Source: Carpediemonas membranifera BICM (Eukaryota > Protista > Fornicata). From it: a stretch of 64,000 nt of DNA. The stretch lies in NCBI GenBank assembly GCA_019828565.1, contig JAHDYR010000025.1, positions 62,001-126,000 on the forward strand, read 5' to 3'. The notes under the pieces are model-generated. The model saw only the letters and a program-made list of their open reading frames with translations, was not told the origin of the DNA and made no database searches. A program made the position numbers and the translations under genes. Positions 9,373 through 41,992 of the stretch are shown one piece after another; the stretch's first letter is position 1; each line of letters opens with the position of its first letter.

Positions 9373-9392
9373 ATGAAGAAGCAGTCGATTTA

Positions 9393-10609: not shown

Positions 10610-10775
10610 ATAAGGCTCTCAGAGCCTTATACACCAATTCGAAATCGTGTATAAGGCTCTCAGAGCCTAATGAATCTCCCGCGCGCCGTTGCCTACTGAT
10701 ACTGGTCATTTTTCCGCATGGTTTATTAGGCTCTCAGAGCCTTATGAATTTTTCATTAGGTCCTGAGAGCCTTAT
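10610..10775. promoter_or_regulatory. Four copies of a 21-bp palindrome ATAAGGCTCT-C-AGAGCCTTAT between divergent genes
   Basis: Copies at 10610-10630, 10651-10671, 10725-10745 and 10755-10775 (last one degenerate). Regulatory role is inferred. Confidence 0.55.
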
Positions 10776-10779
10776 AATC

Positions 10780-12153: not shown

Positions 12154-12183
12154 ATGATTGATTGAATTGATATCTCTTCAAGT

Positions 12184-20327: not shown

Positions 20328-21829
20328 TATCCATGCTCCGTACTATATAGGCCATTCTTTCAAAAAGGCGCGGTCCTAAAAATGCGTCGCCCTTTTCTGA
20401 GTAGCCGGGCCTTTCTGTGTAGTGGTTGTTGCTTTGTTCGTAGTCTCCTTTTAGCCCCTATCGACGGCCCCTGTTTCCCTTTTGCGCTGCCCTTCCTTCC
20501 TTGTGGTCTTGACAAAACCATGTAGCCGCCGGTGCTAGCACTGGCCCTCGACGGTTGTTTTCCTTTTCCTTGTAAACATACGTTCCATGAAGACACTTTG
20601 ATTCCTTGGTATGGGCGTGGAGCTCCCACTCGCGCCCAGCGGTATGCCCTGATGGCAACCCTTGAATGTCCAGACAGGAGGCCAAGGCCGCTCCTTCTGA
20701 GCTCCATGGGGCACTGCCCTATCCATATAGGCCAGGCCTGTTGGTCCTTGTCCATCCATGATCGAAGTGTTTCCACTTTGCTGAAATCATTGGTGGACTG
20801 ACGTTCTAGAGCTGGATCGGCGAAAATGAGGAAAAGACGCTTGTTGAGGACAACAACGCTGTGGACGATCGCAATGGGGCAAGATTAGGTGAATAAAGAA
20901 TAAGTAGTATGCGCTGACGGCGCCTAGTTGATGTCATTCGCTGTTGAAGAGGCGAACTTGCGAAAATCGACATGAAAACCACAAAGTGGTCAGGAGGGAG
21001 GGGTTATAAGCAAAGAAGGGGCAAAGTAGCGATGTAAATGAAATGAAGAGGCAATATCGAGCATTCTGAGCATCGCTCCATCATCTTCGCTGTTCTTCCG
21101 ACATTTCGATGGTGAAATGCCACAGGACGACTCAACTGGGTCATCCAGGAAACACGGGGCAAATCGACCCTATCGGGCCCCCGGGTGTGGTGCCGCACCG
21201 CTGACCTGAGCGGCGCTTTCTATCGCCGGGTTCTATCCACCGTAATAGAGAAACGTGGGTCCGAGCATCCTATCGCTCATGAGGCCCACCAGGCGGGACA
21301 AAGCAGCTTCTAATCACACGTATACAGACATAAGACCTTCTAGGCAACTTGTCCACGTTCAAGACTGCGTTCTCATCACCGCCAACCGCACGGAGATTGC
21401 GGAAATCATTCAGCTTCAAGGTTTCGCACGGCGCCTGCTTGTATCCATCATTCATGTCGTCGCGTGGACAACGAGGACGCTCCTGACACTGGAGAATCTT
21501 GCTCGCCTCGTTCACATGATGGGAAACGCCACCCAGTTCGTTGTACGCATGCAAAGTGCGAATTCTACACGGCACATCGGGAGAGGCACTGAATAAAAGC
21601 ATTGTATACACACCAAGATCCTCTAGCGACGAAATATCACGCTTGATCTTATTGCACGGCGGAATACTGCTCTCTCTCCTGATCATTAAGAACCTAACGT
21701 TCCTGCCCCCTAATCAACTGTCCGATAGCTACAAGACAGTAATTAATTACTGTGGACGCGCAGGAGGACGAAAGGGAATGATCTGTTTACATAAACTGCA
21801 CATTGACTCCTGAGGCACCACATCCTTGC

Positions 21830-22564
21830 GCTGTTCGTGACGCGGCCCCTTGGTATAGCGATGCGCCCCAGCCCTGGCCTGATGCGTCTGTCGCAACCGT
21901 GACCTGCAGGTCTCCCTGCATGCCCCAAAGGCTCCTTAGCTCTGCGAATGGCCTGGAGGGTCGCTGCCGCAGGACCTCGTCCCAGGGTTCGAGAAGCGCC
22001 CTTAGCTCTGTTGTGACTGTGATGTAATCCGAGGGCTTCACCGCCTGAAGAGGACGAAGCCTCAGCAGGGCGGCGTGGGCTGTGGAGGAGAAGAAGGCCA
22101 GCTTGCCTAGTAGCTTGGCCCAGTCTCTCGCGCGTAGTCTGCCCTGGACCAGGGCCTCCTGAAGGTGCTGCCTGTAATGAGCGCTCTTGTCCTCTGATAG
22201 CCTCATGGAGTCTGTTGAAGTGTCTAGTACGACCCCAAGATACTCGATCGACCTTGTCGGGGTCAGCTGTGACTTCTTCAGGCTCGGGATGACTCCTAGA
22301 GACGCCATGAGCTCGATCACCCCCTGCGTCGCACGTGCTAGAACGTCCTTGGACTTGTGGGTGAGCAAGAAGTCGTCCAGGTATACCGACACTTGTACGC
22401 CGAACCGTCGGGCTATGATCTTTGCCAGTTGTACCGTCACGCTCTGAAAGAAGAACGGGGCGGCCTGCCATCCGAAGCTGAGACCTCTGTAGTAGTAAGC
22501 CTTGCCCTCTGGTGTGACGACACCCAGGAGCTTCGCGTCCTCCGGCGCGACCCCTAATTGCATG
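21830..22564 (-). pseudogene. DIRS/Ngaro-type RT C-half and RNase H start (3'-truncated)
   Basis: YYYRGLSFGWQAAPFFFQ, VSVYLDDFLL, IEYLGVVLD and VATDASGQGWGA. Confidence 0.88.
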
Positions 22565-22902
22565 CTGTCTGGAGGGGGTGTAATACAGCTACTCAAGCAA
22601 AGAAAAGTAGCAGTATACTGCCACCTTTTTCTGAGAAGGCCAAAACTTCGAGCCCTCATATTTTTGTATTGGGCTAGAGCTGTACAGCGAAATTTACTGG
22701 GCGGATGTTTGCATCCAAGGGCTACCTAAGGGACATTAAATCTCGAGATCTATATCAAATATTTACTCAATATTTACCGCAAACTTTTCTAAGATAGTTC
22801 CGACCATGGTAAGCCACGCTATGCGTTTTTATTGCGTGGCTGGGTCTGTACCAAATGATATATGCTCCAGAAGTTGCAAAAATCGCAAAAGAAGTTTGTC
22901 TG

Positions 22903-23015
22903 TTCTCGAAATTGCTGATTGCCAACGGCAAACCAGAACCACCACGTTGTAGTATAGCACGTGTACTACAGCCTGGCATGTCTGGTCTAGCGTTGGCAAT
23001 CAGCAATTTGGAGAA
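22903..23015. repeat. Long subterminal hairpin
   Basis: 19-bp perfect IR at 22909-22927 / 22991-23009, with inner stems ACCAGA/TCTGGT and TGTAGTA/TACTACA. Confidence 0.8.
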
Positions 23016-23364
23016 ATGGACGTGTCAAATTTTTGACATTCCGGAAAAAGCCGAACATGGCCAGAACTGAATATAACTCAATAGATCGCTACGGTTTACT
23101 GTGAATCACTGTACTCTTCTGAACTTGATGGCGGAATCCCGCATTTGGCCCTTTCTTGCTCTATATTGAGTAAGTCCTTCGCTCTTGCTAATCTATCCAT
23201 TCCAACACGCTCTGCTACCGCCCACAGTTCTGGATGTGCTAATATTACATCAATTGCAGCTATAACGGTTCCTATCTCTTCGTAATAGTCTCTATACCTG
23301 TAGGATTCCATTTCCAACTTAAAACTGCACTCAGTTTTTTACACCCCCACAAAAGTGGGGCAGT

Positions 23365-24495
23365 ATGGTAGAAGACCAGGAGCGGCTTTCAAGAGATACT
23401 GTGCGTGATATTGTGCACACAATCATCGCAACATGCTATCGTTGGGAAGAGAGAAGCACGAAATGCGATTGTCGCTCCATCGCGGATGCAATCCTTGCAA
23501 TCCTCCCAAAAACTGTTCTAGAGCGCATGCCGCGTAAGCAGGACTTCATGAGGTCAGTACCCAAGGCTATCGAGAACCTTGCTGGCCGCAAACTCTCTCC
23601 TAACACGAAGGGCATCTACCAAGGAATTCACGCGACAGATACAGGGCGTGCCGCATTGATAGCCGGACTCAGCCAGCTTGTAACTCTCACTGACGCTGAA
23701 ACTGATCATTTGCGAAATTCCAAGCTCGACAGCTCCCAAAGAGCCTTCCGGGTGTGCCAGCCGCGCCGCAATCCTGCCGTCCCCACCCCCCACCCCACTG
23801 TTCAGACCGCTGAGCAGCCCACTATGTCCGTTGACTCCACGCGTGCAATGCAAGCTTCGTCAGTCAACGGTGCCAACGTCGCTGAGATGATTGAGGCCGT
23901 GAACCACATGACTGAGCAGTTTAGGAACACGAAGCCAGGCGCTTCCGACGCGGAATACTTTATGGGCACCACTGCCAAGATGTGGAAGAACAGCCTCCGC
24001 AAGTGTTGCCCTTACTGCGCAGACTTACGTGGCCTCTTCTTCGTTGACGGTAGAACAGACGAAACTGTCTTAGAGTGCGACTTCTGCCACAGGTTCGTCC
24101 ACAGAATCTGTGAGGATGATAGCTTTTCGACGGTCACTCGCAAGGACAAGAACAACAATGACAAGACGTTCACCGTCTGTGAGCTCTGTTCAAACGCTGA
24201 GAAGCAGACTATATGCATGAAGGGAGGCTGTGAGACTGATATCTCCGCGAACGGTGTCAACTCTTTCATGTGCATGTACTGCCATGCATACTTCTGCAAG
24301 GACCACATCGCCTTTAATAAGTTTGAGTCTGGCCCCGACCTTATGGGTCGTCCCTCTGAGAGAGGCCCTATCTGCATTTCTTGCTATAAGTCACTGCATC
24401 AGGAAGGGGAGGTATTCGATCTCTCGCACTTCCGTGACATGATGAAGCATTTTGATACAGCTGATGCCGAGGATAACAGTGATTCGAATCAATAA
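23365..24495 (+). CDS. Multi-zinc-finger (PHD-like) protein; cargo of transposon B
   Basis: CPYC...LECDFCHRFVHRIC...VCELC (C4HC3, PHD-like), then C....C...CMYCHAYFCKDH...CISC. Confidence 0.75.
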   Translation: MVEDQERLSRDTVRDIVHTIIATCYRWEERSTKCDCRSIADAILAILPKTVLERMPRKQDFMRSVPKAIENLAGRKLSPNTKGIYQGIHATDTGRAALIAGLSQLVTLTDAETDHLRNSKLDSSQRAFRVCQPRRNPAVPTPHPTVQTAEQPTMSVDSTRAMQASSVNGANVAEMIEAVNHMTEQFRNTKPGASDAEYFMGTTAKMWKNSLRKCCPYCADLRGLFFVDGRTDETVLECDFCHRFVHRICEDDSFSTVTRKDKNNNDKTFTVCELCSNAEKQTICMKGGCETDISANGVNSFMCMYCHAYFCKDHIAFNKFESGPDLMGRPSERGPICISCYKSLHQEGEVFDLSHFRDMMKHFDTADAEDNSDSNQ

Positions 24496-25095
24496 AGGTC
24501 AATGAATGACATATTGTAAGTTTATGCCGCAGATTTGATACTGTGCGGGGGCTCATGCGAGACCTCAGAGTGGGCTTGCCGTCGCATGTCAACAACGAGA
24601 CCCAAAGACCCTTGCCGAACCTTGATCAGACCATCGCCCGTTTGGCGAGTAAGCGCTACACTACCGCTTCACCAGCCCTCCAAGGCAGCGTTTTGGACCT
24701 GCGTCATCTCCGGCGAACTGGAATGATCCAAAGTAACGGTGTAGTGTTCTTTCTGGCAGCTAATTGTGCATAAGCGAATGCTTTGTGGTCATTTATTGCT
24801 CTTTGGCGCAGCAACGCCCACAACTCTTTGGGATACTGTTCTTTTGGTGTTGATGGCACCACCATGCTTGCACCTGATGCAGACTTGTGGGGATTGACAG
24901 ATAATTTCGCTATTGTCATCGAAGGCGATCCGGCTCACGCCACGCTGTACCAGAAGAAGTGCGAGGTCGTTGAGATTGAATAAAGATTTGGATATGCCCG
25001 TGTAGCCAGCGGTTCATGACCTGCAGCAGACATTTGGACGTACAGCGGGATACCACATCAATTAGGTCACTTGCGGGCTAAGATTGTCGTTGTCG

Positions 25096-27272
25096 ATTGT
25101 CATTCACCGGAGGAGCAGGCCAGAGTCACTTGCCATCTGGCGCATCATGAGGAGATATTGGAATGTGTTGATGTGTTTATTGACTAAATGAGCTGGAATT
25201 AGGCGGGTTTGATGTTGCTTACATGTTCTGTGGCATGCCTGATGTCCAAAGATGTATTTTGGCACAGTGATGTTGTTTAGTGTGCTCATAGCTGACCGCG
25301 TAGTTATCTGACTTCAATGTGTCGTGTTGGTGCCAAGAAATCGATGGTAGCTCACACGTTTGAGGTAGTTGCTTGTTGCATCGATGCAACGCACTTTAAG
25401 GATTAAAAAGCTGTACCCCATAGCCGTTTCCTAAGGCCAAATGCGGCCCTCTCTAGCGTATATACACGCGTGTATTGGGACTAGATGCAGTGTTGTGGCA
25501 TGCCCGGTCTAGCTGAATCCACAAATGTGGATCGGCTCTGGCTGCCGTATAGGTGGCCATGCTTTGGACTTATGGCTGGAGACTGATACAATTGGCAGGT
25601 AGTTGACTGGTACGTGCTCATATGGACAACCGACGGCCATTCACTGGCAGGGCTCGCTTCGCAACAGACAGGCGCTCCCTGGGGCTTGGGGCTGTGCATG
25701 AGCTTAGACAATAATCGTGGGTCAGTCTGACACCTGTATGGACATCAACGCGGTCGTAAGCATGCTTCACCTTGTTTTGCCGCAGTTTATGGACGAAATG
25801 GATGTCTTCACAGGAAAGCACTCATCCTCTGAGCATTTGCGGTATCTCATGACAATGCTCGCCGCAGTCGATGTTCTTCGGGGATCCTCGCAATCCATAA
25901 GAGGCGAGCGCCACGGAAGGGCATACTCCAAGACTATTCACACCGAGTTCTTGCGGTCCTTCCTTTTGTTGGAGCGGGAAGTGCTCAACGAGGATCCAGA
26001 AGCGCTAGAGAAGATGGATGCATTGTATTCGGGCGATCGCGAGGAAACAATGAAGATTGTCGAAGTGCACGACGGAGAAGAGGATGAGCCACCCGTAACC
26101 AGCGCATCAAGCTCGCATAAGACAAAGAAGGCCCACAAGCGTCGGCTACTTTCGGCAAGGAAGACCCAGAAGCTAACTTTTCCGTCAGAGATTGTCCATC
26201 CCGATGATGCTGCCTTGCCGGTGGAGAGAAGTGCGTTCCTCCAGAAGTATCTCAAGACGATCAAAGCTAGATTGCCTTCACTAGAGAGGTCAGTCGAGCG
26301 TGTGAATCGGCTGGGGGACATGCAAACTTCCCTGGCGTCACTCAACCATATTGCCGACAGCCTCTCTGAAGAGAACCTCACGGTGATGCGTATTTACGTT
26401 GCGTATAACCTAACTCTGTATGACTATATAGCGAAGGATAAGTTTACTGTGGACCCGATAATTGCTCCAACAGCTGAACTGACTAAGATGGCCGAAAAAC
26501 AACGCAGCGAGTTCATCAGCCGTAACCAGAGTTACTGCACAACCCGCACTCGCAGGACTAACAAGTCAAGCTTCTATAATGATGTACAGAAACATGCCAC
26601 GAATATGGGTGTGAAGAGCATAGAACGAAGCCACATCATCATCGGCATGATGTTGCTGACATACGCCGACTTCGGCAAGTTCCTGGAGGCTGGTTTGATT
26701 CCCAGGGACACGGGTGATGCGAGAGAGTTGGCAAACATGGTCTTGGAGAGCTTCTTCATGGCATATAACAGCGAGGGAGGAACGCGTGCAGCACTCATGC
26801 AGGAACTGAAGGATGGAGTAACTGACACAGACAGGCTATCGATGATGGAGCAAATGTTTGCGCTTTCTGTGGAGACGAACTCCCTGACGTATGTCAAGCC
26901 ATCGCCCGAGACGGAATGTGAAGAGAGAAGTGGGTCTGGCAAGCGGAAAGGCAACGTGACGGAGTCAGGCGATGATGATGGGAAGCGAGCACAGTTGGAG
27001 TAAAGAAGAATCAGTCAAATTTAAAGATAAGAGTGCAGTGCGGAGGAACACTCTCATTCTCCGAATTGTTGTTCATGCGAAAGAGGATGTATTTGTGGAA
27101 CTCGGAGTCACTAATGCGATCTTCACTCAGAGCCTTGAACCATATGCTAAACTCATTCGAGAATGTCGCCAAAACATAGGCACACCATCGATCGAAGAGG
27201 GAAGCCTCGAAGTCGAAGGAAGCATGGATATAGGTTGCCAAGTCTTTCTTTCCGACTCGTAGGCCAACCTTC
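25096..27272 (+). repeat. Segmental duplication, copy 1 (copy 2 = 29128-29360 plus 33806-35749; partial copy 3 = 35767-36277)
   Basis: Near-identical sequence and identical ORF translations. Confidence 0.93.
25717..27003 (+). CDS. Hypothetical protein (428 aa); cargo of transposon B
   Basis: Long ORF with basic/acidic patches; no recognised domain. Confidence 0.65.
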   Translation: MGQSDTCMDINAVVSMLHLVLPQFMDEMDVFTGKHSSSEHLRYLMTMLAAVDVLRGSSQSIRGERHGRAYSKTIHTEFLRSFLLLEREVLNEDPEALEKMDALYSGDREETMKIVEVHDGEEDEPPVTSASSSHKTKKAHKRRLLSARKTQKLTFPSEIVHPDDAALPVERSAFLQKYLKTIKARLPSLERSVERVNRLGDMQTSLASLNHIADSLSEENLTVMRIYVAYNLTLYDYIAKDKFTVDPIIAPTAELTKMAEKQRSEFISRNQSYCTTRTRRTNKSSFYNDVQKHATNMGVKSIERSHIIIGMMLLTYADFGKFLEAGLIPRDTGDARELANMVLESFFMAYNSEGGTRAALMQELKDGVTDTDRLSMMEQMFALSVETNSLTYVKPSPETECEERSGSGKRKGNVTESGDDDGKRAQLE

Positions 27273-27574
27273 TTCCAGCGTAGCAGCTGGAGCTGACGGG
27301 AAATCTTTGATGTTGAAGAATCGATGGCATCATCGCTAATGTCTGAAAATGTCGAGTGCACAATGCCATCACTCCATGATTCCCGAAGCTCATCAGTTTT
27401 TGCGAAAAAGACCGTTCTAGCTTGATCAGTGGTGAGCCAATATGAAGCAAACGCTTCCGCGCAATTTTGACGGACTCTTTCCATTCCTTGGTTGAAAGCT
27501 TTGATCCTGTCTACATTCAACATGCACCACAGCTTGTAGTAATGCTCAAACAATTGTTTCTGATGATTGCTCAT
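27011..27574 (-). CDS. Hypothetical protein (187 aa); cargo of transposon B
   Basis: ATG-initiated ORF, convergent with the 428-aa ORF and divergent from the SET gene. Confidence 0.55.
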   Translation of the reverse strand: MSNHQKQLFEHYYKLWCMLNVDRIKAFNQGMERVRQNCAEAFASYWLTTDQARTVFFAKTDELRESWSDGIVHSTFSDISDDAIDSSTSKISRQLQLLRWKKVGLRVGKKDLATYIHASFDFEASLFDRWCAYVLATFSNEFSIWFKALSEDRISDSEFHKYILFRMNNNSENESVPPHCTLIFKFD

Positions 27575-27607
27575 TGTACGTGCAGTTTACACAGTTTGGT
27601 CGTGAGC

Positions 27608-28921
27608 ATGCCAATTGATTATACCATACCAGACGTGAGTTCAAAGGTTGAGAGTGATCGCTATTGGTCGCTGGATGTTTACAATCAGTTCATGAACCTT
27701 TCAGAGCTGAATGAAGCAGACAGGAACAGATTTCTGTCTATGAACACGTCTAAGCTGTCTTATGACTATTCTGGACTGAAACTGAATGAAATTGGTGTCA
27801 GTGTCAGCAAGAGGCTTGTTCTTACTGAGCAGCATTCGATCTGTGGTGATGCATGCGGCCTCGGGGTTGTATCCCCACATGCGATGAATGTCAACGACTT
27901 CGTCGGTATATACGCGGGAAAAGTCTGTGCTATTACCCCTGAACTTCAGATTGGGCAGCATGACTTTGAGCTTCCCCTTGGCTCCAGTGAGTTCATGGTT
28001 CGTGGCGACCCTACCAAGCACGGAATTCACATGGTGAACGATAACCCAATCGTGACAAATGTACAAGTCCGCTGCATTAAGGTGCAGGTTCAGGTCGATG
28101 ATGACACGGTGCCGCTTCCTCTTCTTGCCCTTCTATGCATCAGGAACACACGGCCTTACGAAAGAAAGAAAGAAATTTATGGTGCTTGGATTCTGACCCC
28201 GGACTGAGCTTGTTTCCCGTTGTCTTGGAGCTGAGTGCCCCGGGGTACTGCCTATTTCCCGTGGCAAACTGGTCAGCAGCGTTTGCCTTGGGCTTTCGGT
28301 GCTACTGTCTCCGCGGAAAGCCGATTCCAATCGCCCCAGAGGCCCTGCGGCCATCTCCGTGCAAATATGCTTTCCTGTCTCCCTGAAAGTCCGGCAACTA
28401 TCCGGGGAGCCTGGGGGTCTGTCCTCGGGGCATTGACAGGCAGGATCGTCCTGCAGAACCTTGACTATGACACTCCTTGCTTCCCTGCAGTCCTTGTAGA
28501 GCCGTTCAGCCACGGCACCCTCTCGTCTGTCCGGTTCCCCAATTCCATGCCCCCTCGACTCTGTTAAGAAGCCTACCCGAAGGCGGGGAAAGTGACTAAG
28601 TCCATGCTGTCTACCCCGGTTAGGTGGCGTGGGTCAGGGCATGGGTGGTGTTCCCCCAGGCACTAGGCCTGGTTGTCCTGTTACCCCTTACAACATTTCG
28701 CTTGCACTACATGTCCTTGGTTTCCCATGTCGTTAACAAGGGCGGCAGGGGCACCCACACGGCCTTACGAGTTCCTTTCTATGGCATACGCGCCTTCGTA
28801 TTGGGAAGGAGAGCATCGTCATTATCCCCTTGATGTTGCAGCATTTGAGCTGATGATTCGGGGTTCCACTATCTTCGATGTTGATCAGGCCCGTCGTTTG
28901 GCTCTCGAATACTTGGAGTAA
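27608..28921 (+). pseudogene. SET-domain protein of transposon B, disrupted by retroposon 28162-28755
   Basis: CGLGVV..FVGIYAG..HMVND..IRNTRPYE|FLSMAYAPSYWE; in frame once the insert and one TSD are removed. Confidence 0.75.
28162..28755 (-). mobile_element. 5'-truncated non-LTR retroposon/SINE with (TTTC)n tail
   Basis: 15-bp TSD CACACGGCCTTACGA at 28147-28161 and 28756-28770; (GAAA)n at the left end; homologous to 42310-42730. Confidence 0.85.
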
Positions 28922-29360
28922 AAGCATCATAGTAGATTCATGAGCTCTGTCAAGTCTCTGGCCTTTGGGGCTCTCTCAACATGCTACTCAGACTTCAGAA
29001 CCAGTTTTATTCACTCACCCTTGTTAACCACCCGAGCAACAGGCTAACAGACCACATCTACATACAACGCAAGGAAGCATGCAGGCCGGCACGTCCGACT
29101 GACTCAAGTCCACAGCCAGACTTCTGCATTGTCATTCACCGGAGGAGCAGGCCAGAGTCACTTGCCATCTGGCGCATCATGAGGAGATATTGGAATGTGT
29201 TGATGTGTTTATTGACTAAATGAGCTGGAATTAGGCGGGTTTGATGTTGCTTACATGTTCTGTGGCATGCCTGATGTCCAAAGATGTATTTTGGCACAGT
29301 GATGTTGTTTAGTGTGCTCATAGCTGACCGCGTAGTTATCTGACTTCAATGTGTCGTGTT

Positions 29361-29444
29361 TGTCGTAGACTCCTTATCATTTAATCAGTTGATGATTACG
29401 ACACCATTGTGTCGAGATTAAAATGTTTCCCACCGACAACGTCA
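29361..29444 (+). repeat. 5' LTR of gypsy 2
   Basis: Identical to 33718-33801. Confidence 0.95.
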
Positions 29445-31451
29445 TAGTGATCACTCGTAATGGTTCAGTTGGAAATCGATTATAATTTCCCGCGTATGTC
29501 GGCCAAGGAGCTCGATCCTCGCGGTGTTAAGAAATTCAAAGCCGAGGTTCGCGTGTTTCGCGCTCGGATCCCCGACTATGCTACCGGGCTCCTGCTTAGC
29601 GAGGAGTTACAGGAAGAATTAGAAGCAACCCTCGGTGTGAGCGCTGAGAGCGCCACCTCCAACCAAGTATATGAGTTCCTCGAATCCGAGGCCACACCCC
29701 GTTCCCTGCTCGAACTTAAACGCCAGCTGCGTGCTGTGCTGTGCCCGAAGCTGGGTACCGAGGGTTACCCCTCGAATCTCTCTGTCGTCCGCCAGCTGGG
29801 CGCCGATTTCGTGGAACTCGCAGATTACGCCCTTCGTTCCGCCGCGAAGGAGGGCAGCGAGAGCCTAGCAGCGCTCTTTGGCAAGGAGAAGCGAAAGATG
29901 GCCCGCCTGCTTGAAGACGGCACTGCCGAGGTGGTGGAGGAGGAGGCACTCCTCACTGCCGCCGACGTCGCAGCGAAGCGAGCAGCCGCCTTCGACAAGA
30001 CGGCAAGGAAGATCTTTCTGGAGAAGATCAAGCCGAAGTCGCTCTACGAAAGGATCGAGCTCGAGAGCCAGTTTGTCAAGCCGTCCTCCCTCAAGGACCT
30101 CATCAACATCGCACGCACCGTCGCCAAGCTCGAGGATGCGTCTAACTCCACGACCACGACCGCCTCCAGCACCTCTGCAGGCGCCTCGCAGGCCAACGAC
30201 CACCGGGAGCACCGTCAGGCGCCTCCCCCAGGCTGCTAAGACCACCACTGCCGCCCAGTCCTCGCGTAAGCAGCGTACAAGACCGTGCCGCCTTTGCGGA
30301 GGCGAGCACTGGGACTCGGATTGCCCTAAGCTCGGGGGCCGGACCCGCGAGAGCGGCCAGCTCCGCCCTAACCCCCCGAAGAAGACGCCCTTCGAGGCGC
30401 ACGCGGCAGAGGAGGGTGATGCTGAAGCTCTCCACACGGAGGCTGTCATAAATCACTCCTCCTATTCTGCTACGGTTGACACGGGAGCCGGGGTCTCATT
30501 CATTAGCAGCCGACTGCTTCACACTCTGAGAGAGCGTGACAACTCCATCAAGCCGAAGAAGTGCCAACCGTTTATCGTCTCGCTGGCGGGAGGTAGCACC
30601 GTCAAGGGTAATGAGATGGTTGAGCTCCGCGTCGAGCTCCCACACCTGACCACGAGACCCATAGTCAAGAACATCAGCTTCAGAGTACTCCCAGGTCCTG
30701 TGGAGAAGCTCCTATTGGGCGTAGATCAGCTGAGAGCCCTCGGGTTCATCAGCGACAGAGGAATCTTCCTCCCTTTCCCGTCGCCAGAAGGCCCGGAGAA
30801 GGAAGATGACATCCTCCCTTACAACCACAGCTACTTATCGGCGGAACACGCTGATAATAGGAGCATCAAGACCGAAATCGATAAGATCGAGTTCGGCGAG
30901 AACGAAAACCGGCGCAGCAGCACGAGAGATCTGCGCTGCATACGAAGAAGTGTTCGAGGAAGAGCTCCCTACAGAAGGCAGCAAGCTTGAACCGATGTCT
31001 ATTGATTTCATTTCCGACGACTGGGTGAATGAGTTCAACCAAAAACCGAGACACCTCTCGGAGGAAAAGCGAGAGAAGGTGCGCCAGGAGGTCACGCAGA
31101 TGCACCTCCAGCACATTATCCGCCACAGTCACGGGCCATATGCCTCGCCCGTAGTGGTGGTTTCGAACGGGCACAAGGGGTCGACCAAGATTCGCCTATG
31201 TGTAGACTACACCGTCATCAACCGTCACACGAAGCGGGATAGGTACCCGCTACCTGACATCAGGGCGTACCTGCGGGAAAGCCGCAGGCGCAGAGTACTA
31301 CGCCAGTCTCGACCTGAGACAAGGTTACTATCAAGTCAAGGTTAAGGAGGAGGACATCCCCAAGACCGCCTTTATCACCCCGGACGCGTACGAGGAGTTC
31401 GAGAGACTCCCGTTTGGCCTCTGCAACGCCCCATCACACTTTCAGAGATGT

Positions 31452-33725
31452 ATGGAGAAGGCCTTCGCGAAGGAGCTACACCACGGCGTGGCTATCTACA
31501 TCGACGATGTCATGATATATGGCCGCACGAAGGAGGAGTTCCTAGAACGGCTGCACAACGTCCTTGATATCTGCAAGGAACAACGCCTCCGGCTCAAAGC
31601 GCCGAAATGCAAGATTGGCGTGGAGGAGGTGGAGATGCTAGGCTTCATCTGCAATACAGAGGGCCTAAAGCTAAGCAAGGAACGCGTGGAGGGAATCCAT
31701 GCCCTGAAAACGCCAACGACGAAGAAAGGACTTCTTTCAATGTGTGGTTCGCTGAACTACGTAGCGAAATTTGTTCCTGACGCTAGTAGAGTACTATCTC
31801 CCATCAATGACTTGCGGTCGGCCACCGATGGCGCCGATTTCATTTGGTCATCGATTCATGATGAGGCACTTGACGAGTTCAAGAGACGCCTCGAGAAGTA
31901 CCTAGTACTGGTCCATCCGGACCTCAACAAGAAGTGGGTGCTCCAGACGGACGCCTCAGATATAGGATTCGGTGGCATCCTCACTCAGGAGGGGGACGAC
32001 GGACGCCAAGAGATAGTCTCGTTCTTCTCGGGATCCTTCAACAAGACTCAGACAAGGTGGAGTACCTACGAACAGGAGCTGTTCGCAATCATACACTGCC
32101 TGACCAGACCAGATCTTGGCCAGCTCTTCAGGATTCACCCAAATCTGACAATTCAGACTGATCACAAGAACCTTGTGTATCTTGATCAGAAGAAGCTTAA
32201 GAACGATAAGATCCTCCGTTGGTCGCTGTTACTATCGGATTATCAGTATACAATCGAACATATCGCCGGTCTTGATAACGAGACCGCGGACTTGATGTCC
32301 CGCATCGACGCACTAGCCGTGGAGCTTACAGATTGGAACGATGAGATTAGTTCTGCTCAAAAGAACACCTCCCAAGAGGAGAAGGATTCTTGGCGACGCG
32401 CTGGTGCCACCATCAACAACAACACCTGGGTGAAGGATGCCGTCCCCGTCCTCCCCAAAGACGCCAGAGCGCTACGACACAAGCTGATCAAAGCCGCCCA
32501 CAGCAGACATGGCGGCAGAGCTGATACGCTTCAACGGGTAGCCGAGGTCGCCTGGTGGCCCGGCCGCGCTAGAGACGTGAGCAACTTCGTCCAGCAGTGC
32601 CCCACCTGTGCCAAGACAAGGCTCAAGCAGTTCTTGTCAGCCCCAGAGGGGCGCACCATTCAAGACTCGTTCTGGAACACCATAGCCATCGACACGGTGG
32701 GACCGCTGTCGGAGGACGCGTATGGGGCCAAGTTCATCTACGTCATCACGGACCTCTACACACGCTACACAGAGCTGCATGCGGCAACCGCAAACAATGC
32801 CCAGAGCGCGGTCGACGCCCTATGGCTGGCCGTCACCCGCCACGGCATCCCAAGCTACATCAAGAGTGACAACGGAACAGAGTATGTTAATCAGGTCGTG
32901 AGCCTCCTGATTGAACAGCTCGGAGCGCACCACCAGCGGACGTTGCCATACCATCCTCAAAGTAACGGGGTGGTCGAGCGCCGGAACGCGGAAGTCGGAC
33001 GTCACCTCAGATGGCTGGCGCTGGCTATGGACGGCTATGGAGAGTGGAGCCAACTCCTCCCCTTCGTCCAACACATCTTGAACACATCAACACACACGAA
33101 GCTCGGCGTATCGCCGCACGAGGTCGTCTACGGCCGCCGAGCAGAGATCGGTTTGGTCAGAAATCAACAAGCGGCGCTAGAGAGACCCGATATCGCGCAA
33201 TATCTCGATCGACTAGCTCACATCCAGGACAATCTGGACAAGGTTATAACTCAGTGCAACAAGAGGGAGGAGAGGCTGGGCCCTGCCCCAACACGCCCAG
33301 CTATTAGGTCAGGTGACCTAGTGTTCATCAAACCAGCTGTCAAGCACAAGCTGCACGGCCTACTCGGCCCATTCAAGGTTCACGCAATCCACAGCAACAA
33401 CGCTGTTGAAGTAGCGTCCCTACTCAATGACGAGAGGCAATTCACGCATCTGGACAAGATTGCCCTCTGCCCTGACATCTCCCTGGAGTTGGCGAGACAG
33501 TATGCCGCCTCCGACGACGAGAGATACATTGTAGAACAAGTACTTGAGCACAACACTCGAGACCACACCCTACTCATTAAGTGGGAGGGCTACACCCAGA
33601 CGACATGGGAACCACTGACACGCGACAATGCCAAGGTCGGCCCAATTTCCGACTACCTCCGGCAACATAGGATTCGATGGAAGCCGTTGAACACCTCGGA
33701 GCGGGGGAGGAGCAGGATGTCGTAG
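31452..33725 (+). CDS. Gypsy 2 Pol: RT C-part, RNase H, integrase, chromodomain
   Basis: YIDD, TDASD, H..H..CPTC, IDTVGP, SDNG, NGVVER, LGPF. Confidence 0.93.
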   Translation: MEKAFAKELHHGVAIYIDDVMIYGRTKEEFLERLHNVLDICKEQRLRLKAPKCKIGVEEVEMLGFICNTEGLKLSKERVEGIHALKTPTTKKGLLSMCGSLNYVAKFVPDASRVLSPINDLRSATDGADFIWSSIHDEALDEFKRRLEKYLVLVHPDLNKKWVLQTDASDIGFGGILTQEGDDGRQEIVSFFSGSFNKTQTRWSTYEQELFAIIHCLTRPDLGQLFRIHPNLTIQTDHKNLVYLDQKKLKNDKILRWSLLLSDYQYTIEHIAGLDNETADLMSRIDALAVELTDWNDEISSAQKNTSQEEKDSWRRAGATINNNTWVKDAVPVLPKDARALRHKLIKAAHSRHGGRADTLQRVAEVAWWPGRARDVSNFVQQCPTCAKTRLKQFLSAPEGRTIQDSFWNTIAIDTVGPLSEDAYGAKFIYVITDLYTRYTELHAATANNAQSAVDALWLAVTRHGIPSYIKSDNGTEYVNQVVSLLIEQLGAHHQRTLPYHPQSNGVVERRNAEVGRHLRWLALAMDGYGEWSQLLPFVQHILNTSTHTKLGVSPHEVVYGRRAEIGLVRNQQAALERPDIAQYLDRLAHIQDNLDKVITQCNKREERLGPAPTRPAIRSGDLVFIKPAVKHKLHGLLGPFKVHAIHSNNAVEVASLLNDERQFTHLDKIALCPDISLELARQYAASDDERYIVEQVLEHNTRDHTLLIKWEGYTQTTWEPLTRDNAKVGPISDYLRQHRIRWKPLNTSERGRSRMS

Positions 33726-33801
33726 ACTCCTTATCATTTAATCAGTTGATGATTACGACACCATTGTGTCGAGATTAAAATGTTTCCCACCGACAACGTC
33801 A
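33718..33801 (+). repeat. 3' LTR of gypsy 2
   Basis: Follows the purine tract; identical to the 5' LTR. Confidence 0.95.
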
Positions 33802-34193
33802 TGTTGGTGCCAAGAAATCGATGGTAGCTCGCACGTTTGAGGTAGTTGCTTGTTGCATCGATGCAACGCACTTTAAGGATTAAAAAGCTGTACCCCATAG
33901 CCGTTTCCTAAGGCCAAATGCGGCCCTCTCTAGCGTATATACACGCGTGTATTGGGACTAGATGCAGTGTTGTGGCATGCCCGGTCTAGCTGAATCCACA
34001 AATGTGGATCGGCTCTGGCTGCCGTATAGGTGGCCATGCTTTGGACTTATGGCTGGAGACTGATACAATTGGCAGGTAGTTGACTGGTACGTGCTCATAT
34101 GGACAACCGACGGCCATTCACTGGCAGGGCTCGCTTCGCAACAGACAGGCGCTCCCTGGGGCTTGGGGCTGTGCATGAGCTTAGACAATAATC

Positions 34194-35480
34194 GTGGGTC
34201 AGTCTGACACCTGTATGGACATCAACGCGGTCGTAAGCATGCTTCACCTTGTTTTGCCGCAGTTTATGGACGAAATGGATGTCTTCACAGGAAAGCACTC
34301 ATCCTCTGAGCATTTGCGGTATCTCATGACAATGCTCGCCGCAGTCGATGTTCTTCGGGGATCCTCGCAATCCATAAGAGGCGAGCGCCACGGAAGGGCA
34401 TACTCCAAGACTATTCACACCGAGTTCTTGCGGTCCTTCCTTTTGTTGGAGCGGGAAGTGCTCAACGAGGATCCAGAAGCGCTAGAGAAGATGGATGCAT
34501 TGTATTCGGGCGATCGCGAGGAAACAATGAAGATTGTCGAAGTGCACGACGGAGAAGAGGATGAGCCACCCGTAACCAGCGCATCAAGCTCGCATAAGAC
34601 AAAGAAGGCCCACAAGCGTCGGCTACTTTCGGCAAGGAAGACCCAGAAGCTAACTTTTCCGTCAGAGATTGTCCATCCCGATGATGCTGCCTTGCCGGTG
34701 GAGAGAAGTGCGTTCCTCCAGAAGTATCTCAAGACGATCAAAGCTAGATTGCCTTCACTAGAGAGGTCAGTCGAGCGTGTGAATCGGCTGGGGGACATGC
34801 AAACTTCCCTGGCGTCACTCAACCATATTGCCGACAGCCTCTCTGAAGAGAACCTCACGGTGATGCGTATTTACGTTGCGTATAACCTAACTCTGTATGA
34901 CTATATAGCGAAGGATAAGTTTACTGTGGACCCGATAATTGCTCCAACAGCTGAACTGACTAAGATGGCCGAAAAACAACGCAGCGAGTTCATCAGCCGT
35001 AACCAGAGTTACTGCACAACCCGCACTCGCAGGACTAACAAGTCAAGCTTCTATAATGATGTACAGAAACATGCCACGAATATGGGTGTGAAGAGCATAG
35101 AACGAAGCCACATCATCATCGGCATGATGTTGCTGACATACGCCGACTTCGGCAAGTTCCTGGAGGCTGGTTTGATTCCCAGGGACACGGGTGATGCGAG
35201 AGAGTTGGCAAACATGGTCTTGGAGAGCTTCTTCATGGCATATAACAGCGAGGGAGGAACGCGTGCAGCACTCATGCAGGAACTGAAGGATGGAGTAACT
35301 GACACAGACAGGCTATCGATGATGGAGCAAATGTTTGCGCTTTCTGTGGAGACGAACTCCCTGACGTATGTCAAGCCATCGCCCGAGACGGAATGTGAAG
35401 AGAGAAGTGGGTCTGGCAAGCGGAAAGGCAACGTGACGGAGTCAGGCGATGATGATGGGAAGCGAGCACAGTTGGAGTAA
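34194..35480 (+). CDS. Hypothetical protein, duplicate of 25717-27003
   Basis: Identical translation. Confidence 0.65.
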   Translation: MGQSDTCMDINAVVSMLHLVLPQFMDEMDVFTGKHSSSEHLRYLMTMLAAVDVLRGSSQSIRGERHGRAYSKTIHTEFLRSFLLLEREVLNEDPEALEKMDALYSGDREETMKIVEVHDGEEDEPPVTSASSSHKTKKAHKRRLLSARKTQKLTFPSEIVHPDDAALPVERSAFLQKYLKTIKARLPSLERSVERVNRLGDMQTSLASLNHIADSLSEENLTVMRIYVAYNLTLYDYIAKDKFTVDPIIAPTAELTKMAEKQRSEFISRNQSYCTTRTRRTNKSSFYNDVQKHATNMGVKSIERSHIIIGMMLLTYADFGKFLEAGLIPRDTGDARELANMVLESFFMAYNSEGGTRAALMQELKDGVTDTDRLSMMEQMFALSVETNSLTYVKPSPETECEERSGSGKRKGNVTESGDDDGKRAQLE

Positions 35481-37089
35481 AGAAGAATCAGTCAAATTTA
35501 AAGATAAGAGTGCAGTGCGGAGGAACACTCTCATTCTCCGAATTGTTGTTCATGCGAAAGAGGATGTATTTGTGGAACTCGGAGTCACTAATGCGATCTT
35601 CACTCAGAGCCTTGAACCATATGCTAAACTCATTCGAGAATGTCGCCAAAACATAGGCACACCATCGATCGAAGAGGGAAGCCTCGAAGTCGAAGGAAGC
35701 ATGGATATAGGTTGCCAAGTCTTTCTTTCCGACTCGTAGGCCAACCTTCATGTGTAGACTTCTGCATTGTCATTCACCGGAGGAGCAGGCCAGAGTCACT
35801 TGCCATCTGGCGCATCATGAGGAGATATTGGAATGTGTTGATGTGTTTATTGACTAAATGAGCTGGAATTAGGCGGGTTTGATGTTGCTTACATGTTCTG
35901 TGGCATGCCTGATGTCCAAAGATGTATTTTGGCACAGTGATGTTGTTTAGTGTGCTCATAGCTGACCGCGTAGTTATCTGACTTCAATGTGTCGTGTTGG
36001 TGCCAAGAAATCGATGGTAGCTCACACGTTTGAGGTAGTTGCTTGTTGCATCGATGCAACGCACTTTAAGGATTAAAAAGCTGTACCCCATAGCCGTTTC
36101 CTAAGGCCAAATGCGGCCCTCTCTAGCGTATATACACGCGTGTATTGGGACTAGATGCAGTGTTGTGGCATGCCCGGTCTAGCTGAATCCACAAATGTGG
36201 ATCGGCTCTGGCTGCCGTATAGGTGGCCATGCTTTGGACTTATGGCTGGAGACTGATACAATTGGCAGGTAGTTGACTGCTACGTGCTATGGACAACCGA
36301 CGGTATGCCTGTCTGGGCATCAGCGCTGTCGTTCAGGCCAATCCACGTTTGTGGATCCGTGCAGTTTATGGTTTCTCGGCCTCCATGCAACAGCCCTGCC
36401 TCACCATCGGTATCGACGCGTACTGCGGCAAGAACAGCTTCACCCAGGGCGAGGATAACGTCCGCCAGGGTCAGCGCCGCTCCGTCATCGGTATGTCCGC
36501 CTGGTACGTCGAAGAGCAGGGCCACCTTGAGACCGTCAACCGTCCCGTCGAGACCATCGCCCGCTTGGCGAGTAAGCGCTACACTACCGCTTCACCAGCC
36601 CTCCAAGGCAGCGTTCTGGACCTGCGTCATCTCCGGCGAACTGGAATGATCCAAAGTAACGGTGTAGTGTTCTTTCTGGCAGCTAATTGTGCATAAGCGA
36701 ATGCTTTGTGGTCATTTATTGCTCTTTGGCGCAGCAACGCCCACAACTCTTTGGGATACTGTTCTTTTGGTGTTGATGTTGTTATTGATGTTGATTTCTC
36801 CGCTTTTCGCTGCTTTGCGTTGTAATTGCAATGTTTTCTAGTACATTCCGCGCATCAGATCATTGCTACAACCTGAACTCGCCATTTTGGCGTTGCAATG
36901 AAACTATCCCCTAAAGTGCACACTAAATGAAATCAGAACAATTTGTGGCCAGCTGCGCCAAGTGGGAAGTTTCAGTCTACTCTGTGCGTTAAAAGGTCAC
37001 CATACTACATCTTCGTGGTTCGGGATACGTGCATTTTCGTGTCAATCAAACTTTTACTTCGTTCTCACCCTCTGGACTGGATAGAAATA

Positions 37090-39830
37090 CTACATCCGTG
37101 CCCTCCGCTGCTGAAATTGGATCTCATCGTCTGAAATCAACGCGCGACGTTGATCAAGGTCGGCTTGCTGTTGGCGTGACTGCCGTGCGTCGGGCCGCAC
37201 CCCAGGATCAGATGGACGTTGGCAGATACAGACTGTACAAGTAGAGTTCTCATCATGGTGGTCTCCTACAACGCATGTGAGATAGTCACCATCAGTTATA
37301 AACGAGTCAGGGACGGCATTGTTGAGATGCTGCTGAAGACCGTCACGTAAAGCTGCTAGAGTGTCCTGAACGGAACCTTTGAAATTGTCATTCACCTCTT
37401 TGGAAGTCCCAAACATGCGGTTTCGCCAGCTGAATGCAGAACTGGCATCCCACAGACATTTGTGAAGACGAATCCGGTTGACGTGAGTCTGCAGTGGCGC
37501 AACGTCTGTGTGCTTTCGAGACGTCCGAACGCCAGTGATAAAGGCTGTCAACCGCCTGACCTGCAGCTTCTGACAGTTGTACAGCAGCGTTCTCACACGA
37601 TGCTTCTCTCTGTGAACAATTGCGTCGAGCAAAAAGTCTCGCTCGAAGTACTCCTCCAGGAGATTGAAGAGTGGAATTCGCAGCCTGTGGCACACTTCTG
37701 GCAAAACTGCAATCAGGTCGTGCATGTATAACGACCCTGCAAAATCGCCCGTGTCGTAGCGGAGGTAGGGCTTCTGCCGAACATCTCTACCGGCTTCAGG
37801 TTCCTGGGCGTCATGGTTGTTGCGGTTCCGAGGCTGCTGGGCAGTCGGTAAGACCAGGGTCGAGACATGGAAGAAGTAGAAAGTAACCATCCCCATGAAA
37901 AACAGCTTGCGAACAGTATAATCCGTCACGGGCGCCTTGGAGTAGAGCAGAGCCTGGAGATGACTGATGATCAGAATGAAGGGGCGGAGAGTTTCATCAA
38001 AGCTGTAGAGGTAATCGTTGGACAGAACGGCAAGACGGTGTCTATTCCAACTCTGTTCGTTGCATCCCGTCGTGCGGGTGAAGGCAGCATCGATATGGGT
38101 CTGCAGGTGGTTGCCGCGAACAGCTGGAGTGAATCGTTCCAGTAGAACCCACATCTGCCTCATGAGCTCGTGGCTGACGTGCATCACTGGAGGGCAGACG
38201 ATGACTTGACTCAGACTGGGAGAATTGACGTAAAATTGTCTCGTGTCGTTATCGTAGTGGCAGAATAGTGGTGTCTGGACCTGGCCATTATCCAGACTAT
38301 GAAACAGGGTCGTCTGGTGTTCACCATTGAGTAAGGTGGTTCGGCCCTGCACGGTCTGTCCCAGAGTCAGCCGGCTACAGAACGCATCGTACGGGTTTCT
38401 TGGCAGAAGGGGAAATTCAATTGCCGAGAACGGCGACCTGCTGTATCCGCCCTTGCTCACCCCGCAGATGATCTGCATGGCCTTGTGGTCTGCCAGTATC
38501 GCAGTAAGTTCCACCTTAACTGTACAGTTGGGCATCATGAAACACTTATCGTAAGAGATTGTCGTCGCCTGGCGGATGAGATTCTCGATGACGGCTGAGT
38601 GTTTGTGGAGGTCACCCTCATCTCCACTGTACTGATAAATCGTATAGGGAGGAGTGATCAGCTGCGGGAGAACTTTGCCGGAGGAGTCATAGAGTCTGAC
38701 CTTGACCGCCGTGGAGGCCTTGCGGTAACCGTCAATCCAGACAAATAGCTGGATCGTCTTCACACTCGCAGAAGAGGAATCTACCGAGTTTCGCATTGCC
38801 GTCTTCGCGACAGTGAAGCTGTTTTTGGCACGTTCGACTGAAGCGGGATTGTCGAGAGCGAATATGATCCATTTCCGAAGGTTGTATGTCAGGCTAGATG
38901 CATACTCATGGCGACTGTTATGATACCGGCGGAACACGACGTCGTTCGCTGAGAGACGCTGGCAGACTGCGTCAATTTGACCCTCGTATGGCGACAGAAT
39001 AAGGACACCTGAACCCCCTACTGAGAACTTCTCGTGGTGGAAAACATGCTCAGAGACCAAATATTCGTCAGTGCGGAAGAGGCTGAGGATGGAAGTCGTC
39101 TGCTCCTGCTGACAAGCGATTTTTATGCTGTTGTCTGACGCAACAGTCACAGGGAGACCAGAAAACGCAGCAGTATCAGGGTTGACCATAGACAAGCCGC
39201 TAAATCCGTCAAAGATAAGGCTGGCCGGTGTGTATGCTGCCATATCAGTGACCAAGGCTGGATCGCGGAGATTTCGGTTCAGTGGGCCGTAATCAAGAAG
39301 ACTCGGGCCAATATCCTTGAGGGGCTTCGCCGGTGGGAGTTGTGGAACTCGATCGGCGACGTTCATCGCCTGTGAAAGGTGATTATAAACGCGACGCAGG
39401 CGGTCATACTTGTTGGCGCCTAAGTCGACCGAAGCTATCGCAGCAAATGCCTCCAAGAACTCTGTGACTGTCGTTGACTGGAGGGAACTGGGGATGAAAG
39501 CTGCAAGAGTGAGGTCAACATTTTTGTGCTTAGAAATCTTTGGACGCCACGAAAATTTCTCGCCTCCAAAGCGGTTTCAAGAGCAGGAGTAAGAATGAAG
39601 CGCGGATTCCGAGAAACAGCCAACGAAACGTCCAAAAATCTTTGAACAGACGCCTCATCGAGACGCGGACGGCCGGAAACTGTACATTTGGTAACAATCT
39701 TCGCTTCCAGCACCGCCAAGAGAACCTTGAGCGAGCATGCGCCTGAATACATGACAATGCCATGCACTGTATTAATAATCTCCGTCTCGGAAGCCAAAGT
39801 CGCCATTTCCGGTGATCGCGTTCGTTGCAA
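37090..39830 (-). CDS. RAG1/Transib/Chapaev-like DDE transposase B (about 900 aa if the frameshift near 39535 is bridged)
   Basis: FVWIDGY (D1), ILADHKAMQIICG (D2), CPPVMH, YMHDLIAVLPE and LLEEYFERDF (E), in RAG1/Chapaev order; lies inside a TIR/TSD-bounded element. Confidence 0.72.
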
Positions 39831-41000
39831 TTAATCAACATGATTGATCGCAACAGGCCGGGCACGGAGGCAGGCCCAAGTGATCCAGGGGCTGGTCGAT
39901 CTTGCAGATCGTTTGGGAGAGGTGCTTGGACGCGAGGAGTTAAAGATCGCACAACATGTGTCAAATCCGGCAAATCGATATCGTGTAAAAAATGGACAGA
40001 GGGGAAGAAGCGACCCATAGGACATACCTGTGGACCACTTCCTCCCCTCTGTCCATTAGCATTGCAGTGTTGCAGCGTTCCGCCACCCTTTTCCGAGAAG
40101 GCCAAAACTTCGAGCCCTCATGTTTTTGTATTGGGCTAGAGCTGTTCAGTGATGGACAGCCCAGTGACTGTGTCGGCATATATAGAGATATCAGTGCAAG
40201 CCCCAATACAGCCCCTTAACTTTTTTTCTTGTAAGCTGGGATTGGGAGCATTTGCTATCTCCGTGGATAAACGATCTATACCAATTTTACTTGCAGTTCT
40301 GATGGTTTGATCAGTATTTGGATGAATTGTGTGGAAATCACCGCTATAAATGCGTTATCCTCAAAGAAAAGCGTTTGGAATCAATAATCCATTTCAGGAA
40401 CCAAGAACTTCTCATTGACGGTGCATTACTATATTAAAGACCTTATGATGTGTCTATCTCTCCCAATCATCCTCGTTTCCCGGATCTCGGTTTGGTTTCC
40501 ATTTGATTTGATCAAAAACGAAGCAACAGCCGCCAATATGAATGGGTTGAGGTGACAAAAACGGGTCTTATCCGGAAAATGAGCTCAGCAACAGCGCCTG
40601 CATCTCGCTGTGCCTTTTTTCTGCTCCCAGTGTTGATATATCCTTTCAGTGAGTACCTCCCGCGCGCGAGACAACGTGGGTCAAGGTAGGAACCATGGGA
40701 CCGAATTGTCTCCAAAGTGTAGAGACTTGCCATGCCATATCGCCGCGTAGAGTCCCAGCTGATCAGCAGAGTCGTTTCATGAGCAATATCAGCATCTTTA
40801 ATTCGCATTTGATGACGATTTGATTAATTTTTGGGCTTTACGGGACGCCAAGTAATTATCGCAGGCCAAGCACGTGCTCAAAGGTGCATCAGGAAGGGGG
40901 CTACATGGTGCCAGAGTAAGACGTTCTAAATCGGACATTTTTGACAGAGCCCCTCTGTTCCGTAGGTGTATACTGCCACCCATACACCCCCTCCAGACAG

Positions 41001-41531
41001 CATGTGGTGGTAGCCCGACCGTAGATCTATCTTTGTCATGTAAGCGTTGTGTGTGAGTGTGCTGAGGGCCCGCTTGAGGCCGAATAGTCGGAATGTGCGT
41101 GCCTCCGATGAAACAGCATTGAGCTGGCGAAGGTCGTGCACGACACGGATGTTCTCTGCGCCCTTGGCGACACAGAACAGTGGGGCGGAGTGACGCAGGT
41201 CCTGGAGCGTGCACTCCTCTAGAACTCCCTCCTGTAGCATCTCTGCGATCTTTTCGTTGATCCTCGGGTCCATAGTACGTTGTGGTTGTGGTGGCGGTGG
41301 CGGCTGAGTGACGGAGATGGGTACGCCGTGGTGCAAAAGGTCTACAACCTCCTGGCTTGCACCAAAGCGCTCCCAAAGCTCCCATTTGGCATTCATTGAT
41401 GGAAATTTTTGTCTTAATCTCTCTTGTTCTTCTTGTTCTTGCCGCCACCCTGGCCCCTCTGGTAGCTGGGCGGGCCTGGAAAAAAAGTCTCCTTCGACAT
41501 TGCTGCGAACATGATGTCGTCCACCTCGCAC
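41001..41531 (-). pseudogene. DIRS/Ngaro-type RT N-half
   Basis: SAPLFCVAK..RVVHDLRQLN..MTKIDLRSGYHHM; continues at 22560. Confidence 0.88.
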
Positions 41532-41992
41532 TCTGACTTGATGTTGCGTGCCTTCGAGCGGAATGTGGCCGCGAAGCGGTTGACAGTAGTCTTGCTGTAG
41601 TTTTCGTCCTTCATCTTCAGGATCCTGCGGCGAGCCTGAAGTTCAATCCTCTTCCTGTCCTTCTTATCCATCCTAGAAGCCTGCAGCATGGCGGAAATTC
41701 TCCGAACGAACATCGCCTCCTCTCTTAGCGGGCCCTTTGAAGGAAGATCTGCCAGTCCGTCGATGTACCGGATAGTAGCGTCAAAGTTCTCGTCCTCTTC
41801 ATCCTCAACCTCTTCGTTCTTCTTTTCCTCTGCTTCCTCGTGCTCGCTAGCAAGATCGAAGATCGGGGACTCGTTCTCCCTTTCGCTTCCTTTTGCAGCA
41901 GCCAACTGGCTGACAGTTCCAGCTAGCTTCTCAATCTGCTCTTTTAGTCCCGCGAAATCCGATGCCGTCGGCGGAGCCGAAATTTCTACCAT
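41414..41992 (-). CDS. DIRS-type gag-like ORF1
   Basis: 192-aa ORF overlapping the RT ORF start, as is typical for DIRS elements. Confidence 0.6.
   Translation of the reverse strand: MVEISAPPTASDFAGLKEQIEKLAGTVSQLAAAKGSERENESPIFDLASEHEEAEEKKNEEVEDEEDENFDATIRYIDGLADLPSKGPLREEAMFVRRISAMLQASRMDKKDRKRIELQARRRILKMKDENYSKTTVNRFAATFRSKARNIKSECEVDDIMFAAMSKETFFPGPPSYQRGQGGGKNKKNKRD

Follow-up and report, generated by a model that had tools for sequence, protein, structure and literature searches.

A large Carpediemonas DNA transposon with a probable RAG1/Transib-related transposase and predicted SET, PHD-type and OTU-like cargo genes

Transposons of the CACTA-Mirage-Chapaev-Transib (CMCT) clade have CA..TG ends and 2-5 bp target-site duplications (TSDs), and the zinc motifs C(2)C and H(3-4)H occur in all of its lineages (PMC12730594). 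PlavakaB, one of these, has CATCA..TGATG termini and a TSD of 2-3 bp, and some PlavakaB elements carry TET/JBP genes; for fungal DNA transposons with such genes it has been proposed that the epigenetic enzyme serves to evade silencing (PMC12730594). Transib and RAGL elements have a 5-bp TSD and CAC ends that resemble the heptamer of the recombination signal sequence, and the RAG2L protein is defined by a six-bladed kelch plus a PHD (PMC7204232). Chapaev has CAC..GTG ends and a TSD of 3-4 bp (PMC4079192). Since both TSD length and end sequence are labile in this clade, including some Transib lineages (10.64898/2026.08.26.747230), they support a placement but do not define it. Here, we describe an element of 18,444 bp at positions 22561-41004 of a 64,000-nucleotide stretch of contig JAHDYR010000025.1 (the window) from the protist Carpediemonas membranifera, whose genome was obtained from nanopore and Illumina reads in a paper that leaves transposons unmentioned (PMC8516963). 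Our genome searches covered its assembly of 24.2 Mb in 69 contigs, and a published description of these elements was not found in the literature searched. With a probability of about 80%, we regard the element as one of a lineage of cut-and-paste DDE transposons, so far only in Carpediemonas, that belongs to the CMCT clade (EnSpm/CACTA, Mirage, Chapaev, Transib/RAG1, Plavaka, ESTA) or lies beside it.

The longest perfect inverted repeat of the element is 22 bp and has CATG first, and its ends are:
22559-22560, no strand: left copy of the TSD (TG)
22561-22582, plus strand: left terminal inverted repeat (TIR), 22 bp, CATG start
40983-41004, minus strand: right TIR, 22 bp
41005-41006, no strand: right copy of the TSD (TG)
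A first-pass annotation of this DNA had recognized a complete element with perfect TIRs, which is borne out; there are 30 ends and 11 paired copies in the genome. It had also set the boundaries at 22565-41000, with an 18-bp TIR, a CTG start and a 4-bp TSD, and all of these need correction. The inner 18 bp of the TIR occur at 30 genome sites and are preceded by CATG at all 30, because CATG, with which the element begins, is part of the 22-bp TIR. A genome search with the TIR and its flanks revealed that 9 of 11 paired copies carry a duplicate of the two bases flanking CATG on the outside, with a sequence that varies among them (TT, AT, AA, TC, GA, GA, AT, CT and TG, the last in the window copy); in a permutation test the mean was 1.3 matches, and 9 or more were reached in none of 200,000 shuffles (p<5e-6). 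The element interrupts a reverse transcriptase (RT)/RNase H gene that we take from its motifs to be DIRS-like (window 21787-22558 and 41007-41610), and deleting the element with one TG restores its RT motif DLRSGYHQLG. The earlier claim of mobility, made from the exactness of the insertion, holds. An empty site of the 2-bp form occurs as a paralog, with 3 mismatches, and no paralog was found for the 4-bp form. Because a variable outer dinucleotide is duplicated, the RT is restored and the empty site has the 2-bp form, we place the element at 22561-41004 with a 2-bp TSD; such CA..TG ends are ordinary for the CMCT clade. Joining the flanks of the 9 TSD-matched pairs yields, in 7 of them, a frame that stays open for over 140 codons to either side.

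The element has been recently mobile. Its paired copies are 8.6-27.8 kb long, with an end divergence of 0-2.5%, and they display TIR-bounded mobility with a 2-bp stagger into varied targets, often other retroelements, and the existence of non-autonomous partners. Five of the 11 contain the transposase; the other six (type-B) have instead an OTU-like gene, another gene and long 14-bp tandem arrays. These arrays, of up to ~190 units, stand in for the transposase in type-B copies such as L035-L038, and the same 14-bp repeat interrupts the transposase of another family (P0015). In two paired copies (C1:33083-50574 and C34:158883-169913) the TSDs do not match, and seven ends are extra or have no partner, for which recombination between copies or misassembly may account; re-pairing the orphan ends by TSD gave no spanning match.

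The transposase lies near the right end, as first annotated:
37090-39806, minus strand: transposase gene (905 aa in copy C1b; D359, D440, H543, E722)
No sequence match to it was found in Pfam, PHROGs or PDB, and at E 1 none of 14 family members had a Pfam match, including to the Plavaka domain PF18759. Its kinship is suggested by structure prediction, which agrees with the RAG1/Transib-related core proposed at first. The AlphaFold model (predicted local distance difference test, pLDDT, 72) has RAG1 or Transib as all of its top 41 Foldseek matches (E 9.5e-7 to 7e-4), and VIA aligns 443 residues with RAG1 (Z 13.2, root-mean-square deviation, rmsd, 6.2), bringing model residues 114-760 onto RAG1 460-1005, with an ACT-like segment (222-300) where RAG1 has its pre-RNase H domain. 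By feature and shape similarity, its atlas neighbours are CACTA Transposase_21, Plavaka and RAG1. D359, D440, H543, E719 and E722 are invariant in every alignment row that covers them, and the His between the second Asp and the Glu is present in 16 of 16 homologs, in a PPxMH rather than a DxxH motif. By motif spacing rather than superposition, we take the acidic residues to match RAG1 D600/D708/E962, and the conserved His presumably corresponds to RAG1 H795. The model thus supports a RAG1/Transib-related DDE enzyme.

Several points weigh against this placement. The model has a pLDDT of 72 and an rmsd of about 6 Å, the P-element transposase reaches a comparable Z (12.3, with only 334 residues aligned), and no described CMCT family could be linked to it by sequence. 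Judged by motif spacing relative to RAG1 rather than by superposition, neither C(2)C nor H(3-4)H is complete in any of the 16 homologs: the first Cys is found in 7 of 15 rows and both in none (the window transposase reads SPFS), and the first His in 10 of 16 homologs and the second in 0 of 16. As to the cargo described below, the PHD and OTU assignments lie under database thresholds, and the frequent co-location of cargo with transposase loci is inflated by clustering of the transposons.

In the window transposase, a homopolymer near 39526 has one A too few, a 1-bp frameshift that leaves a 758-aa open part, and the same deficit is seen in three other copies. As 13 of 14 indels between copies fall inside homopolymers, the shift suggests nanopore error; public reads over the gene cover 39552-39911 only. 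Neither this shift nor the splitting of the SET gene by a 594-bp insert (below) was in the first-pass annotation. The transposase is identical to a C. membranifera hypothetical protein, and an exhaustive search of 1.84 billion proteins yielded 17 relatives. Those with a named source are all from C. membranifera, and the rest come from GCA_002919055.1, one ENA metagenome and short Logan/JGI contigs; of these, we take GCA_002919055.1 and the metagenome to represent the C. frisia culture. The divergent protist lineage proposed earlier is supported. The C. membranifera genome has at least 54 transposase loci, 20-40% identical, and in the transposase tree its lineages interleave with those of the second assembly. 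Profile searches outside Carpediemonas gave no transposase relatives, and scans of viral and metagenome loci gave no result.

Compared with the CMCT clade (EnSpm/CACTA, Mirage, Chapaev and Transib as well as Plavaka, ESTA and Lanisha), the present elements share a predicted RAG1-like DDE fold, the His after the second Asp, CA..TG termini (CATG..CATG here, CATA..TATG in a relative, L057) and a TSD within the 2-5 bp range; they differ in their incomplete zinc motifs, absence of a sequence match, size of 11-28 kb and multi-enzyme cargo. PlavakaB is like them in its CAT start, its TSD, the epigenetic-enzyme cargo of some members and its place among the atlas neighbours, but its terminus is CATCA rather than CATGC, its range is fungal and its cargo is TET/JBP rather than SET/PHD/OTU. 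The TET/JBP transposons carry one DNA-modifying enzyme, in contrast to several predicted protein-modifying or -reading domains here. Transib, RAGL (ProtoRAG) and RAG1 provide the best solved-structure match, across DDBD-PreR-RNase H-insertion-CTD, yet at 10% identity and with a 5-bp TSD, CAC ends and an intact zinc site. Chapaev belongs to the same broad clade; the link to it drawn earlier from a 4-bp TSD does not hold, as the TSD measures 2 bp and the ends read CAT rather than CAC. EnSpm/CACTA has a Transposase_21 domain and CAC ends, neither of which was found here. Membership in Chapaev, Transib/RAGL, CACTA or P can be rejected, each failing on the features of that lineage. We file the elements as a new, separate CMCT-related lineage outside any named superfamily, because their catalytic residues, termini and TSD agree with the clade while their zinc motifs and the features of the named lineages do not.

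The cargo of the window copy consists of:
23365-24495, plus strand: 376-aa protein: C-terminal finger of PHD pattern (C4HC3), plus a second Cys/His finger of variant type (PHD_4 E 0.04)
24850-24983, plus strand: 3' remnant of an OTU-like gene, which sister copies have intact
25738-27003, plus strand: 421-aa open reading frame (ORF), with 24-28% homologs beside SET/PHD genes of other families
27011-27574, minus strand: 187-aa ORF
27542-28161, plus strand: SET gene, 5' part (256 aa when intact, as in copies C18a and C1b)
28756-28921, plus strand: SET gene, 3' part
The SET protein and other ORFs of the first-pass annotation stand, and its multi-PHD-like protein stands as a Cys/His-rich ORF of PHD pattern whose PHD scores are below thresholds (PHD_4 at E 0.04; another match, at 0.8, serves as a lead only). 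In this ORF the C4HC3 finger precedes the variant one, with ligands invariant in 3 diverged homologs, and the finger is likely PHD-type from its sequence pattern; the AlphaFold model of the region has a pLDDT of 41. A profile of five SET homologs matches G9a/EHMT2 at E 6e-9 and one homolog matches Pfam SET at E 9e-4; with the SET-fold motifs in place, the product is a predicted lysine methyltransferase. The OTU-like genes retain a DGxC motif and a late His, and their best match in PDB is OTUD3 (E 0.05). No kelch domain was found in any cargo ORF scanned, and no GNAT or caspase-like gene in the 11 copies of this family. Across the genome we count 99 PHD-like, 135 SET and 89 caspase-like matches, and by inspection a SET or PHD-like match lies within 20 kb of 48 of the 54 transposase loci, a count that clustering inflates. 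A type-B cargo ORF of 462 aa (L035:5068-6456) has ~90 genome matches; to the eye its N-terminal half resembles a degenerate tyrosine-recombinase core-binding domain, for which the databases gave no support.

The copies are built of modules bounded by ~0.55-kb internal repeats, and modules are duplicated, inverted or absent among them. In the window, the repeats and nested sequences are:
25096-25636, plus strand: internal repeat copy 1 (~0.55 kb), module boundary
28162-28755, no strand: 594-bp nested insert splitting the SET gene (15-bp TSD, short simple-repeat tail; retroposon-like)
29118-29360, plus strand: internal repeat copy 2, 5' part, where a 2.2-kb duplicated module starts
29361-33801, plus strand: nested Ty3-type long terminal repeat (LTR) retrotransposon with 84-bp LTRs and a 4-bp TSD (TGTT), encoding protease, RT, RNase H, integrase and chromodomain
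33802-35755, plus strand: remainder of the duplicated module, with an identical second 421-aa ORF at 34215-35480
35756-36303, plus strand: internal repeat copy 3
Nested inserts and duplications had been noted before, with a net length of roughly 10 kb; the nested structure is confirmed and the net length is ~11.2 kb once the LTR element, which is outside the transposon proper, the 2.2-kb duplication and the 594-bp insert are subtracted. The 421-aa ORF (24-28% identity) and the type-B ORF (65-97%) also adjoin other transposase families; therefore, modules move between families. A small retroposon-like repeat is represented by both the 594-bp insert and window 42312-42730, which are 78% alike. 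Further Ty3-type pol pieces lie at window 12654-20327, where an 874-aa ORF (17703-20327) has no Pfam match, and at 43064-44326. Near the ends of the element are two further features:
22610-22618, plus strand: subterminal 9-mer GCAGTATAC (left end, position 50; right end, position 29)
40082-40149, plus strand: 68-bp direct repeat of the left subterminal 22620-22687, upstream of the transposase
The 9-mer is a possible transposase-binding site. Imperfect hairpins at 22903-23015, 5' of the PHD-like gene, and 39991-40057, 5' of the transposase, are possibly regulatory.

A complete relative in the second assembly (L057:2171-13799; 11,629 bp) sits inside an LTR pol gene, whose RNase H frame is restored when the relative and its TSD copy are removed. 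It has a 36-bp TIR beginning CATA, a TSD of GC, and genes for transposase, OTU-like, caspase-like (called from His/Cys motifs only), SET and PHD-like proteins; other relatives have a GNAT gene. A 45-56 bp motif between its cargo genes (5274-5329, 9651-9695 and 11707-11762) resembles the internal repeats of the window element. The window also holds a sister family (1-13093) with caspase-like (325-1335), OTU-like (2556-3401) and GNAT-like (3655-4449) genes and an N-truncated transposase (4532-5923). It forms an 11.5-kb palindrome (1616-13093), which may not be a one-off assembly artefact, since the motif pair at its centre recurs at C56:71914-72067; orientation in other copies does not support this centre repeat as the sister TIR. 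Window 50800-62796 contains host genes for a phospholipid flippase, an ABC transporter and, in two reading frames, a formin.

It could be argued that the cargo is host DNA captured passively, in the manner of Pack-MULE or Pack-CACTA elements, and has no role for the transposon. Cargo does vary from copy to copy, modules are swapped between families at 65-100% identity, SET is broken in the window copy, and dN/dS (nonsynonymous against synonymous divergence) is uninformative among recent copies, which are too similar for a test of selection. However, deeply diverged families from two assemblies still have these gene types, 20-35% identical, in open frames that are free of introns and conserve catalytic or zinc residues, and the diverged N-terminal halves have dN below dS (0.59 vs 1.70 and 0.89 vs 1.74, near saturation), making passive capture unlikely. 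Equally unlikely, in our estimate, is that the PHD-like protein acts as a RAG2-like cofactor, binding the transposase and coupling it to methylated histones. A PHD-pattern gene beside the transposase is conserved in two assemblies, ~1 kb away in several families, but RAGL elements have a kelch-plus-PHD RAG2L gene and no kelch was found here; the two genes are convergent and 13 kb apart in the window yet neighbours in divergent orientation in L050, SET but no PHD-like match lies near the transposase in some families, and transposase-less copies retain the first half of the PHD-like gene. The functional parallel with RAG2 drawn earlier is not upheld, the gene being one of several cargo genes, and the analogy is rejected as homology given the lack of kelch and the variable position and orientation.

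We consider it somewhat less probable still that the transposase belongs to a distinct superfamily or is related to the P element rather than to CMCT. P elements have an 8-bp TSD, an N-terminal THAP domain in the transposase and ends that begin CATG, a start shared with the window element, and P transposase not only ties with RAG1 on Z (12.5-13.2 for RAG1) but has a lower rmsd, and the CMCT zinc motifs are missing here. Yet RAG1 and Transib align over 410-450 residues, ACT-like segment included, some 110 more than P; Foldseek is significant for RAG1/Transib only, both atlas searches lead to CACTA/Plavaka/RAG1, the longest TSD here is 2 bp, and Pfam finds no THAP. Finally, an 18-bp TIR with a target-specific 4-bp CATG TSD, of Chapaev-like length and piggyBac-like specificity, would also account for CATG at 30 of 30 ends and leave the host RT in frame (as YHHMQLG), but is highly improbable given the paralog of the 2-bp empty site alone and the CAT ends and 2-bp TSD of L057, and CATG target specificity is ruled out by the dinucleotide TSD and the empty site.

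For a CMCT-related cut-and-paste element, the following course may be envisaged. The transposase would bind the 22-bp TIRs and subterminal repeats and excise the element, probably via hairpins on flanking DNA as its fold suggests by comparison with Transib and RAG, and integration with a 2-bp stagger would follow; the six transposase-less copies that share these ends would have moved in trans. Recombination between the ~0.55-kb internal repeats may duplicate, invert or delete modules and swap them with other families. SET, PHD-type and OTU-like genes, with GNAT and caspase-like genes in sister families, would be long-standing genes of the element. On the model of TET/JBP genes in fungal transposons, the cargo may write or read chromatin and ubiquitin marks, keeping the element active or aiding access to target chromatin, a suggestion for which we see the chances as evenly balanced. 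More tentatively, and with the odds against it, the elements could form a superfamily-level RAG1-like branch without the structural zinc site, with an exchangeable kit of writers, readers and erasers that builds permissive chromatin or steers integration, their host being a eukaryote without ORC and Cdc6.

What is new here is the corrected ends, the missing zinc motif, the split into autonomous and non-autonomous copies and the swapping of modules. As to the origin of RAG2, nothing new follows. The findings extend the RAG1/Transib/CACTA clade to a deep-branching, free-living protist, where it has undergone a large and recently active radiation. A natural enzyme with a RAG1 fold, apparently without the zinc site of its clade and with a 2-bp stagger, may help in understanding how TSD length is controlled. 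We found no description, in the literature searched, of conserved histone- and ubiquitin-type enzyme genes in DNA transposons, and counter-silencing encoded by a transposon would become directly testable.

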